A DNA stretch of 64,000 nucleotides from Bugula neritina. Lineage: Eukaryota > Animalia > Bryozoa. The notes under the pieces were generated by a model. It was not told the DNA's origin and searched no databases. It worked only from the letters and a program-made list of their open reading frames with translations. This document shows, one piece after another, positions 45,557-57,500 of the stretch. The DNA is taken from assembly GCA_964035545.1 (NCBI GenBank), contig OZ037770.1, positions 4,806,662 to 4,870,661 on the forward strand, in the 5' to 3' direction. Within the stretch, counting starts at the first letter, position 1. Each line of letters opens with the position of its first letter. The position numbers and the translations under genes are program-made.

Positions 45557-48500
45557 ATGGGAATCTGGTTGAGACATTCTGGACAGCCTCCTGTAGACTG
45601 GTCAGATGTACAGTCTGCTAATACCAAGTCATATACTATTGCTGAGGTGAAACGTGAAGTTGGGAGTTATGATATCACAGATCTCAAACTAGAGGGAACA
45701 ATTCCAAGTAACATTGGAGAGATTGCTGGTAAAGCCATGTGTCTATGTGTTTCTAACCTGACTGACAGAGCAAGTCTAGACAAGTGAGTGTCTATTAAAT
45801 AGCTGTGTAAATGTTAAACAAGTTTATTTGTGTTATTTATTAAATAATAATGGATAATAGACACTGAAGCTGAGGCATATTTTTGCTCATAATATATGCG
45901 TACAACATAATATACATCAACATAGTAATATGTCCAAGAGAACCTGTCTCTACTGTTATTTGATAGTGTTGACTGAATGATGTTTCATGTATATATATAG
46001 CTAAAAACTGGAGTAATGTACAGTTTGTAATATATTATACAGAAGATTATGTTTTGTCATCAACTGCAAATTTACAATCCTAAACATTAGTCAATATAAT
46101 AACTTACATAGCAATTTAGAGTGAGGCCTCATGTACTATAAACTAACAGCTAACCTTGCATAATGAAGCTTCCTCTCCTCACTTACAACAGAATATAACT
46201 GAAACTCTTTGGTGTTTTTTGCAACAATATATCTGTTTCCTGCATGTTTTTTCTGTTAAATACGCAATTAGCATAATATAATAGTATATTTTATTTTGAT
46301 ATGGTAAACATAAATACATGACACACTTTATATTACAGTCTATGCCAGCTGACTCAGTTAGAGAAACTAGACATAGGATATAATCCTCTCAACACAGTAC
46401 CAGAAGTTGTGTCATCACTTACATCACTTGAGGAGTTAAATGTGGAAAACTGTAAAATAGCTACTCTACCTGAGAGGTTTCTGTGTCGCAGTCTTTTTTG
46501 TTTCAAACACTCAATGATTCACATGTTGATATAATGCTTACGAAGTATGGCGAATTAGTATGTCACTATGTATTGTTGAAAAGCATAAAGCTATAAATTA
46601 CAATTTTCTTGAAGCTATATGATATTAGAATTTTCTCAAAACTTGAAAATATTGTAAATATGTTTCAGTTATCTGGCATTACATTTTCATTGCTATAAAA
46701 CCTTGTTCAACAAATACTATAGCACCCACTTGTAGTTTACTAAAATCTAGTTCATGTTAAATGCTTTTTAGCTTTTGCTATTTTACTTTAAATTTGCTTT
46801 GTTGCAATAAATATGTTTCTTGGATATTTTACCTGATTGAATACACAAGTATCGTATATACAGTATATAATAATATCCTTATACAGTGGATTACATATAT
46901 TATGCACTTTATATTACAGTCTATGTCAGCTGACTCAGTTAGAGAAATTTAACATAGAAGGGAATTCTCTCCACACAGTACCAGAAGTTGTGTCATCACT
47001 CGCATCACTTAAAGAGTTGAATATGTGGGGCTGTGAATTATCTACTCTACCTGGGAGGTTTTGTATTGCACAATATTATCTCTGTTTCAAACATTCAATA
47101 TTTCACTTCTTTAATGCTTATCAAGTAGTGTTATGCTATTTTATTATATATTGCCAACGTATGTTAAAAAACCTATAGATATGCATTTTCGAACTTGTCC
47201 AATAGTTTGTCGCAAGGTGGAAATAATACAGCATTATGGTATGCTATTGTATATCCTTATATCACAAGAACCTTTTGTAATGAATAATAAAACAGCCATC
47301 TGCAGTTTACTGGCAATCATGGTAATAATCGAATCATTCTTAGCTTCTTGCGTCAATCACTTTGACTATCCATTACCGGAATGAATTTTTTTCTGAACTT
47401 TTTACCTGACTGACTGTGCTTAGCAATATAACATGTACAGTGTATATTATTATGACACAGTAGACTACATATATCATACCCTTTATAATTATTGCAGTCT
47501 ATGCCAGCTGACTCAGTTAGAGAAACTAATTTTAAGAGGAAATCCTCTCAACACAATACCAGAAGTTGTGTCATCGCTCACATCACTTAAGGAGTTGTAT
47601 ATGGGGAACTGTAAATTATCTACTCTACCTGAGAGGTTTGTGGAACACAGTCTTTCTTGTTTCAAACACTCAATAATTCACATGTTGATATAATGCTTAC
47701 CAAGTATTGCTAATTAGTATGTCACTATGTATAGTTGAAAAGCATAAAGCTATAAATTACAATTTTCTTGAGGCTATATTGTATTTGAGTTTCTCAAAAC
47801 TTGAAAATAAATATGTTTCAGTTTTCTGGCATTACATTTCCTATTGCCATAAAAAGTTCTTCAACAAATACTATAGCACCGCTTGTACTTTACTAGAATC
47901 TATTTCATATTAAATGTCTTTTACTTTAAATATGCCTTGTCAAAATAATTTTTTTTTGCATGTTATACCATATTGAATACACCACTGTAGTATACAGAGT
48001 ACATAATATTATCCTGATACAGTGGATTGCATATATTATGCACTTTATATTACAGTCTATGCCAGCTGACTCAGTTAGACAAACTAGACATAGGATGGAA
48101 TCCTCTCAACACAGTACCAGAAGTTGTGTCATCACTCACATCACTTAAAGAGTTGTATATGGGGAACTGTAAATTGTCTACTCTACCTGAGAGGTTTGTG
48201 GAGCACAGTCTTTCTTGTTTCAAACACTCAAAAATTCACATGTTGATATAATGCTTACCAAGTATTGCTAATTAGTATGTCACTATGTATTGTTGAAAAG
48301 CATAAAGCTATAAATTACAATTTTCTTGAGGCTATATTATAATATTAGATTTTCTGAAAACTTGAAAATAAATATGTTTCAGTTATCTGGCATCACATTT
48401 CCTATTACTATGAAACCTTCTCCAACAAATACTATAGCACTCGTTTGTAGATTACTAGAATCTATTTCACATTAAATGCTTATTAGGTTTCGGTATTTCA

Positions 48501-54500: not shown

Positions 54501-57500
54501 AAGTATTGTTAATTAGTTTGACAATATGTAGTGTTGAAAAGCATAAAGCTATAAATTACAATTTTTTTGAGGCTATATGATATTAGAGTTTCTGAACACT
54601 TGAAAATAAATATGTTTCAGTTATTAGGCATTACATTTCCTATTGCTCTATAACCTTCTTTAAATAATACTATAACACCTACTTGTGGTTTACTAGAATC
54701 TATTCCCCATTACATGCTTATTAGCTTTCGGTAGTTTACTTTGAATTTGCTTTGTTGAATTAAATTTTTTTCTGAACTTTTTACCTGACTGACTGTGCTT
54801 AGCAATATAACATGTACAGTGTATATTATTATGACACAGTAGACTACATATATCATACCCTTTATAATTATTACAGTCTATGCCAGCTGACTCAGTTAGA
54901 GAAACTAAAGTTAAGAGGAAATCCTCTCAACACAATACCAGAAGTTGTGTCATCACTCACATCACTTGAAGAGTTGAATGTGGAGAAATGTGAATTATCT
55001 AATCTACCTGAGAGGTTTGTGTGTCACTACAAATTGTACATCATTTTTAACGTTCAATAGTTATTATTTTGTAGCAGAATTTCAGCACAGTAAATACTAC
55101 ATTAAGATGTTTATACTTTTTCTCTGCAAACCTCCATATGAATCTCGCCTTTACAGAGGAGATTGTCAATTAGCACACTATCTAGAAGATTCCCGACGTC
55201 ACAAATAAGTTTATAGTATTCCAATATCTTTTTTGAAATGCTTCCCATGAGAGGTTGACTAGGCTTTTCTTAAGAAATTGTTTTATCAAACCTTTTCATT
55301 ATATTATAATGATTGTTACTTCTGTACCCATAATTGGTATATATTGTAGTAATTTTAGTAATTACTAGTTTTGTGGGCTTCTAGCGAGCAATATCTTTAT
55401 ATTATCTTCCAATAATATCACGGCTTGTAACAGGAATGAATGATTTATTAATACGCAGTAAAAGTAGTAGCGAAACGATACATCCAATATCAAGGGTAAA
55501 AATATACATCTATCTTACACTAACTAGCTATCACACTCTGAGTATGGCTGCTATCTACATCCGGCGCCCTCCGCGCATTGCTGGGGGTCTCATGTGACGG
55601 ATATCGGATTGGCTGGGGAGCACGTGGGATAACATACTACACTCCCCACTACACTGCCCCCCACCCCAGCAGGAAGCCCACCATCCTGATAATACCAAAA
55701 TAAAAAAATAAAATAACAACAAAAAAACAATAAGATATCTGCATCAAAAGATCAAAATTTATACTTAGGCCAACGGTTTATTAAAAAAAAACATCTGGTT
55801 AAAATATAAAAATTAGGCACTATAAAACTAAGAGATTGTATCTGTATCAAGAGCTTTTTGTACGGCACCGAGAGATATGATGTGTAGAGAGACGGTAAGT
55901 GAGGCACCACCTGCGGCGTAGATCAGGAGGACAGCTGGAAAGAGTTAGGGACAGGGAAATAGAGAGGGGAAGGAGAACGTCATCTACGACACTGGGGTTG
56001 TCACAAAGACGGGTGTCTGGGCAATGTGGAAGGTAGACACTCAGTCTTTATCATCTCTCTTGAGCTGGGCCACAGAGTCCCGGAGAGCCTTGAGTTCAGA
56101 AGCGGCGGCTGATATCCTAGACGCCAACCTCTCTCTCTCTAGTTCATGCATCCGTTGCTCCATCTCTCTTAGATTTCTAGCAACAGAGGAGTGGCGTTTG
56201 GGGATGAAGACTGCCATCGCCACTTACGAGAGGGTCGAGGGAGACAGGTGAGGACGGGCATCATCTCTGGGGGACTTCTATCCGTTGTAAGACTACTCGG
56301 AGTACGATGTTGGGACGGGGCGCAGTGTGAGCGGGGGTGACAGGCGAGGTACCAGGGGCTTCCTAAGCCCAGGGGGTTTGGGGCAGGGTCCTTGGGTAAT
56401 GGCACGGGGAGCGGGAAATTCTTGGCTCAGCCGTTCGTAACGAGCAGGGTCTGAGATGAATGGCTTGATGAGGCCGAGAAAAGTAGGGAAGGAAAGCTTG
56501 TCCACATTGTAGAGATGTCCAACGTGACACTCCATAGTCTTCTGGTGACGGAGGGTGTAGTCCCTGTGGTAGCTGTACTCCCCACAGGGGCGGAAGGTGG
56601 TGATAAAATGTTGATGGATGTGTACTCGGAGGCGGCGAGGTGTGGTGAAATGCTGTTGACACAGCCGGCAGGTGGTGCAGTTGTCGTTTCCTCTATTTTG
56701 TTGAATCATGTTCTCGCTACCCTGGGTAACCCAGCTAGACCGGGTTATGAGTATCTCCGGTAGTGTAGCGGAAGTAGGTTCCGTCTCCCAAGCCATCTCC
56801 AATGGTGGCATATCATCATAGTTAGAACAGCGAGTGATATCTGAAAAAGCAGAATTATTGTTAGATCAAATTTGATCTTTACAGCATAATTCTGATGACA
56901 ATCGACTGTTACTAGTCTGAGAGTCATGCATCTTTTTGTACGGCACTCGAGAGACTGTGTTTGGACGTGTAGACTGGCTGAGAAACATAGTGTCAAGTTC
57001 CAGATCTAGTAGATCATCGGCCATTGTTATGTCCTCGTCGTCTTTCACGTTTAGCCCAGTCTCCAGCAATTGTGATTCAACCAGAGTGATAAAATCAGAA
57101 TTAACTGATGTCAGACCCGTTTCCATAGATAGGAATACTAGGGCTAGGCAGGCTTACTTTGGAACTTGGTATTTGGAATCATACTCAACGTTCAAGCTTG
57201 GATTTTAGTGGTTTTAGTATGTCTACCTTTGGTGATGTCAGCGTAAAAAAAGACTGGACAGCGTGTTTATTTCGCATGACTAGAACTGTTTGCCTCGGGC
57301 GCAATAATTCCACCTAATACTCCGCCCTCGCAAAAGTTGATATTTTCGCGGTGTTCACAACTTCCTTCGTTTCGCTACCAGTCTCTCAGTACCGCACCCA
57401 GCTTGGCCTTCATGTCTGCCGCTTGTAACGCAGTCGCATACGAAGTCTCAAATATACTAGGGGTTGCCTAGTACGTTGTCCACTTTCCAAGGGAAGTGGT

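Follow-up and report, generated by a model that had tools for sequence, protein, structure and literature searches.

Lamprey VLRs and the leucine-rich repeats (LRRs) of plant NLRs vary on the concave LRR face, the former being extracellular proteins somatically assembled from cassettes and the latter making use of NB-ARC. Here we describe a gene of the bryozoan Bugula neritina in which an array of sixteen LRR exons, varying at codons predicted to form the binding face, precedes a Roc GTPase, a COR domain and a caspase. The array lies in a 64,000-nt stretch of contig OZ037770.1 of assembly GCA_964035545.1 (positions 4,806,662 to 4,870,661 of the forward strand), which is called the window below and from whose first letter plain positions are counted. 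While VLR-type proteins are secreted or membrane-bound and somatically assembled from incomplete cassettes, this gene has a complete germline open reading frame (ORF) to ~1,760 aa, with neither signal peptide nor transmembrane segment in the exons read.

The closest described genes are the exon-arrayed, shuffled LRR-ROCOs of brown algae, with selected concave sites (PMC3341825, PMC11378527). As in B. neritina, those of Ectocarpus and kelp are clustered and expanded, have repetitive phase-2 LRR exons, exchange exon sequence within and between genes, bear three to four positively selected concave sites per repeat and are candidate immune receptors of unknown ligand. A preliminary description of the window had invoked the one-LRR-per-exon genes of Ectocarpus, a parallel that holds for the repetitive symmetric LRR exons and fails for their content, each exon here encoding two LRRs on 138 nt against one LRR on 72 nt in the algae. 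The bryozoan gene is furthermore an animal one and ends in a C-terminal caspase, a word absent from PMC11378527, and the non-coding or inverted exons of the algal genes have no counterpart here (0/95). Its likeness to brown-algal ROCOs is likely to be convergence.

Bacterial LRR-Roc-COR conflict proteins, for which a caspase is listed as an effector (PMC8195603), resemble it in their fast-evolving N-terminal LRRs, their AP-GTPase(Roc) and COR domains, their C-terminal effector and their several paralogues per genome, but the bryozoan genes are spliced, encode a metazoan-type two-subunit caspase and have one effector type across the genes examined. In the HNWD allorecognition genes of Podospora, concerted evolution goes together with four selected residues per repeat, and in het-d/het-e, as here, units are exchanged within and between loci and a cell-death effector is part of the same chain (PMC1805685). 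These genes, however, join unsplit WD40 repeats to NACHT in proteins of proven function, whereas here intron-split LRRs are joined to Roc-COR in a protein of predicted function. The LRR-Roc-COR fold is also common to MFHAS1, LRRK1/2, DAPK1 and the Aplysia LRR-Roc-COR-TIR protein (PMC9334734), but these animal ROCOs are single or few conserved genes with a kinase, death, TIR or no effector, and no hypervariable exon array has been reported for them. No animal family joining these features was found in the open-access literature, which likewise returned nothing relevant on Roc-COR with caspase in amphioxus or on ROCO proteins in bryozoans.

Seven hypervariable codons per exon

The 16 exons of the preliminary description were all found in place with canonical ends (Table 1), and every four-residue string in its two lists matches exactly. 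Fifteen of them measure 138 nt and exon 9, through an in-frame 9-nt deletion, 129 nt; none contains a stop codon, every one is in phase 2/2 and all share one acceptor and donor context. With two LRRs of 23 aa per exon, of the SHOC2/Leptospira type, the array comprises 32 LRRs. Since exon 6 repeats exon 5 exactly, the array holds 15 distinct exons, and introns 4-6 likewise do not differ from one another; the underlying triplication is very recent and may be an assembly artefact.

When the suggested per-site entropy was computed, variation proved to be confined to three codons in LRR 1 and four in LRR 2. These seven of 45 codons per exon (11, 13, 14, 34, 36, 37 and 39, hereafter hot codons) have an amino-acid entropy of 1.5-2.7 bits, against at most 0.87 at the other 38 in the 16 exons. 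Nucleotide identity is 94% in the exon framework, 61% at the hot codons and on average 82% in the introns (range 73-100%), the latter being near-identical, as had been claimed for all of them, only within copy families. In the register LxxLxLxxN/C, the hot codons occupy x5, x7 and x8 in each repeat and, in the second, also x10, while x2/x3 are nearly fixed, so that the earlier statement that the x positions of this motif vary stands for the former and not for the latter. Three hot sites of repeat 2 are in register with those of repeat 1, an agreement whose probability by chance is 1/220 to 1/1771. In an AlphaFold2 (AF2) model of the terminal large exon, with a pLDDT of 89, the LRR strand spans x3-L-x5; together with the register and LRR geometry, this would place x5 on the concave strand and x7, x8 and x10 on the next loop. 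The hot codons are predicted binding-face positions.

Among the 95 LRR exons of the eight neighbouring genes, there are 85 distinct hot-site combinations and no stop codon. Codon 11 encodes 10 amino acids with 10 codons. Diversity reaches 0.56 at the first and 0.36 at the second positions of hot codons, with 0.07 at 4-fold sites and ~0.20 in introns, and the third bases are fixed (83 NAC and 0 NAT at codon 11, 89 NAT and 1 NAC at codon 34).

Two further variable regions were noticed. The N-cap exon (45557-45783) and its seven paralogues are 77-84% identical and show a few recurring variable positions, which possibly belong to the same surface. The subfamilies L032-L034 differ in framework, their two-LRR exons being 141 nt long or irregular, and have apparently variable residues in the same register.

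Evidence for diversifying selection

Site models (our own GY94 fit of M1a and M2a on the 15 distinct exons) favour M2a over M1a with a 2dL of 77 and an omega of 12.5, and the two exon halves, each with its own tree, give a 2dL of 45 and 22. The 79 exons of seven other genes yield the same seven codons again, plus 18 and 42, with an omega of 5-6, a replication that is not fully independent because of the ancestry they have in common with the 16. Since recombination inflates site models, concerted evolution with conversion and without positive selection was simulated; in 18 runs 2dL ranged from 0 to 30 and omega rose up to 5.7, the observed 2dL lying above every run, and at matched diversity the top entropy was at most 1.6 bits against the 2.7 observed. 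By the method of Nei and Gojobori, dN/dS is ~1.1 on the a priori strand positions including x2/x3 and ~1.8 on x5/x7/x8. In a network count, replacements make up a higher share in the a priori surface class than elsewhere (Fisher p 0.007 with the 95 exons and 0.11 with the 16). A tree-free codon-network test, which saturates and is conservative, put the omega-like values at 1.3-1.5, which do not exceed 1 significantly.

That last result would suit a reading without positive selection, in which the surface codons lack constraint or mutate at a locally raised rate and the remainder looks invariant as a result of conversion, as would the rise of the M2a test to a 2dL of 30 by conversion alone and a framework omega of only ~0.7. 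Yet diversity at the hot codons is 2-3 times that of the introns and 5-8 times that of synonymous sites in these exons; x2/x3 and further surface codons lack such diversity, both repeats display the pattern in register, and the fixed third bases of the hot codons themselves speak against a mutation hotspot. This alternative is largely refuted, and we hold it to be very improbable. There is thus good evidence for diversifying selection at binding-face codons: the selection on the concave face proposed in the preliminary description is supported by the site models, the paralogues, the simulation and the fixed third bases, and it does not reach significance in the tree-free test.

Targeted hypermutation, DGR-like or other, was also considered in view of the NAC/NAT pattern of several hot codons, and it was rejected: codon 15, an invariant Asn, has been spared, other hot codons fall outside this pattern, third bases are fixed, and the only nearby reverse transcriptase is that of a Gypsy relic.

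Exchange between exons and between genes

The last seven exons of the array belong to a 3.6-kb block shared with a gene ~310 kb away (Table 1), whose ROC-COR exon is only 92.5% identical. Within this block introns differ by 1.9%, the framework by 3.4% and the hot codons by 26.5%; 26 of the 49 variable residues differ, no change is synonymous only, and of the 104 codon states that differ, 99 can be found elsewhere among the exons of the set. More generally, 59 intron pairs, many of them across genes, are at least 97% identical while the adjoining hot codons differ by 23-33% and the framework by ~3%. Linkage (r2) is 0.01-0.04 within exons, even below 10 nt, against 0.11-0.21 within introns. The exons are therefore shown to be fine mosaics, with sequence exchanged within and between genes. 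A strict recombination unit of half an exon, an intron and half an exon was tried and fits only in part, hot codons differing by 23-33% beside introns that are 97-100% identical.

The simplest account of these sequences would be that unequal crossover moves units and blocks, and that frequent short conversion tracts in the exons make use of a cluster-wide pool of binding-face codons. As such tracts would draw on the shared pool, the contrast within the block mostly mirrors the diversity of that pool, which selection would keep diverse against homogenisation. Taken together, the data of this one assembly point to diversity arising by germline conversion from a shared pool with diversifying selection. 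One paralogue (L024, ROC exon at C6:4987135) has a TGA in its ROC-COR exon and yet 14 intact LRR exons, and could donate exon sequence. Between it and another gene, identity is 98.9% in the ROC exon and 85% in the N-cap, which points to conversion at the level of domains.

From N-cap to caspase

The array is part of an LRR-Roc-COR-caspase gene predicted to encode ~1,850 aa, with a solenoid of ~35 LRRs including those of the next exon, and read exon by exon the frame stays open over ~1,760 codons. Roc scores above the Pfam cut-off (E 2e-7), with P-loop, switch II and G4-like motifs at exon residues 104, 158 and 227. The COR that follows has a weak Pfam COR-A match, below cut-off, and was recognized with Foldseek by its likeness to LRRK1 (E 6e-23), a Chlorobium LRR-Roc-COR protein (E 6e-21) and the isolated COR 3dpt (E 4e-10); the AF2 model of the large exon also resembles LRRK2. 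In the caspase large subunit the His-Gly (THGG) and Cys (EACSG) motifs are kept, the latter aligned with QACRG of the ancestral caspase-3/6/7, and the best solved-structure matches are caspase-3/6/7/8 and CED-3; the domain is thus a predicted Cys protease. No other ROC exon lies between the large-subunit exons and the small-subunit matches on C6. The coupling to a caspase announced in the preliminary description is supported at the level of gene structure, with Roc-COR standing between the LRRs and the caspase.

The core is Roc-COR, no NACHT/NB-ARC core being present, and by structure the gene is a member of the ROCO family and neither an NLR nor a VLR. In the exons read there is neither a signal peptide nor a transmembrane segment (maximum 19-aa hydropathy 1.16) and the protein looks cytosolic, which sets it apart from the cell-surface allorecognition receptors of Hydractinia and Botryllus. 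An 18-bp minisatellite of 37 copies (44419-45090) occupies the probable first intron of the gene.

Table 1. Features of the array gene and related segments, given as window positions or on L001 and C6.
Feature	Position	Strand	Remarks
16 symmetric LRR exons	46339..55014	+	AG/GT flanks, phase 2/2, introns of 397-458 nt
Recent triplication of exon+intron unit	48056..49759	+	introns 4-6 identical, exons 5/6 identical, exon 4 differs by 4 nt
7-exon block (exons 10-16)	51396..55014	+	96.3% identical to last 7 exons of another gene, C6:4547478-4551095
3' end of probable non-coding 5' exon	44328..44355	+	donor 44355/6; matched by the loose end of an RNA contig (of a paralogue or other individual)
First coding exon, 75-aa N-terminal cap	45552..45783	+	ATG at 45557, phase-2 donor; one copy before each of 8 arrays
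8.8-kb intron	55015..63824	+	contains degenerate minus-strand Ty3/Gypsy-type LTR relic
Start of 2,003-nt exon (three LRRs, Roc, COR)	63825..64000	+	runs on past window end, L001:187-2189
Linker and caspase large-subunit exons (five)	L001:2515-4220	+	after ROC-COR exon; linker acidic
Two caspase small-subunit exon matches	C6:4895202, C6:4895734	same strand	94-95% identical to exons of a paralogue
3' part of upstream paralogue (Roc-COR and caspase exons)	2357..8600	+	preceded, just outside the window, by its 15-exon LRR array

Family, transcripts and neighbourhood

At least 69 related ROC-COR exons are found on several contigs of the 216-Mb genome, ~30 of them in the C6 cluster at 2.5-6.3 Mb, and a 19-mer of the array exon type has 309 genome matches (control, 0). 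The eight neighbouring genes carry 7, 14, 18, 7, 4, 15, 16 and 14 LRR exons, all 95 of which are intact and on the coding strand, with no pseudo-exon or inverted exon among them; two genes with 97% identical ROC exons carry 4 and 15 LRR exons. At distant loci two-LRR exons precede Roc as well, and in one of them caspase exons follow it. Close homologues are present on JGI contigs; another individual provided one exon, whose locus is at most 92% identical and not an allele. A scan of metagenomes with the exon alignment returned no close loci.

In run X8, guessed to be RNA, the depth lies mainly on exons, and joints lead from 45783 or LRR donors to LRR acceptors with GT..AG ends, confirming splice sites and tandem exon inclusion for transcripts of the family. 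Alternative splicing or somatic rearrangement of the symmetric exons could give each gene a combinatorial repertoire in the manner of Dscam or VLRs; it would agree with the uniform phase and common splice context of the exons, with RNA contigs whose joints skip or go back, and with the alternative splicing of the LRR exons of Ectocarpus ROCOs (PMC11378527). Nevertheless, these joints come from contigs of 90%-like paralogues, are not assignable and have skip lengths that are not interpretable at this likeness, the exon-exon joints mean tandem inclusion and not a choice of one among many, pseudo-exons and inverted exons are absent from the 95, unlike in Ectocarpus, and a germline process accounts for the data. 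We consider such a mechanism distinctly unlikely here and keep to germline diversification.

In a comparison that covered this region alone, 42% of its 31-mers occur in the best sample and only 6-8% in other samples, which either strong polymorphism or cryptic species may explain; some intron pieces are present in one DNA-like run with no difference. This low sharing and the colonial habit of the animal would suit an allorecognition system, in which polymorphic self/non-self arrays kill cells after unrelated colonies fuse. The parallel would be Podospora het-d/het-e, whose HNWD signature is alike in its concerted evolution and its four selected residues per repeat (PMC1805685). On the other hand, low sharing may stem from cryptic species, at least 69 genes on several contigs look more like a repertoire against pathogens than like a handful of segregating loci, and a cytosolic protein would act only after cytoplasmic contact, all of which makes this role rather unlikely in our eyes.

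Several other elements lie in the window. Three related degenerate relics of Ty3/Gypsy-type long terminal repeat (LTR) elements are on the minus strand (1-1165, ~9862-15226 and ~55500-62530); the terminal repeats of the middle one are 91.6% alike, and two paralogues each carry one of the relics in the matching intron, the one that precedes the ROC exon, with positions differing by ~125 nt. A decayed LRR-Roc exon fragment (39388-39739), 74% identical to a paralogue and with frame breaks, is a relic of another family member. An unrelated spliced gene apparently stands between the two ROCO genes, with an ORF at 23032-23379 on the minus strand and adjoining exons; this ORF resembles the N-terminus of a proline dehydrogenase, but Pfam gave no match for it. 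Furthermore, a 1-kb segment with TAC-type microsatellite ends is duplicated (23975-25007 and 29003-30027, 82% alike), and a 250-bp tandem repeat is present in 2.8 copies (18134-18839).

A candidate sensor, switch and protease in one chain

The best explanation, which we regard as probable, is that the gene encodes a cytosolic single-chain sensor, switch and protease, whose array would form the sensor solenoid and be diversified in the germline under selection. N-cap, LRRs, Roc GTPase, COR, acidic linker and caspase follow one another in the predicted chain. Unequal crossover would have changed the number of exons (4-18 in the eight neighbours), a change tolerated because the exons are in phase 2/2, and short conversion tracts, more readily formed in the exons (94% identical) than in the introns (80%), would homogenise the framework and reshuffle the binding-face codons, the diversification being wholly germline. 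A foreign or altered ligand would bind the concave face and shift the nucleotide and dimer state of Roc-COR, which would bring two caspase domains together, and induced-proximity activation would result in cell death or inflammatory cleavage, as expected of a receptor that resembles an NLR but switches through Roc-COR and not through NACHT/NB-ARC. Every functional step is here borrowed from ROCO and initiator-caspase biology; by this analogy the array gene would work most like an NLR with a different switch, possibly as an immune or allorecognition receptor.

Several points weigh against this explanation. The tree-free test falls short of significance and, because recombination inflates site models, the omega values are overestimates. 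The RNA contigs belong to paralogues or other individuals and not to the array gene. The small-subunit exons appear to follow an intron of ~21 kb and are placed by their match to a paralogue. Finally, the catalytic pentapeptide is EACSG and not QACRG, Glu replacing Gln here and in most neighbours while two paralogues keep Gln.

Furthermore, a signature of this kind reveals an arms race and not the opponent, and the proteins might guard or sense fast-evolving endogenous partners (selfish elements, symbiont products or reproductive proteins) instead of pathogens; the host does turn up in symbiont metagenomes, but positive evidence is lacking and the caspase output and family size suit defence, so that we see very little chance of it. 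A bolder proposal, which goes beyond the sensor-protease explanation and which we think doubtful, is that bryozoans evolved a cytosolic animal receptor of a new class, in which Roc-COR would take the place of the NLR switch and directly fire a fused caspase, and whose pool of binding-face codons would be recombined across dozens of genes fast enough to yield a repertoire proper to each colony, via splicing or somatic conversion even to each zooid or cell, maybe deciding fusion.

The diversification of LRR-ROCO genes by exon arrays, known from brown algae, thus exists in an animal, and the family clearly exemplifies concerted evolution that works on exons and spares introns. For most ROCO proteins neither ligands nor switch logic are known. 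A large family with a variable face and its own protease would provide a direct read-out by caspase cleavage. For bryozoan immunity and allorecognition, the open-access literature searched contained no molecular handle. If the bolder proposal is true, dozens of genes would share a recombining pool of binding-face codons, which would give each colony a repertoire of its own.

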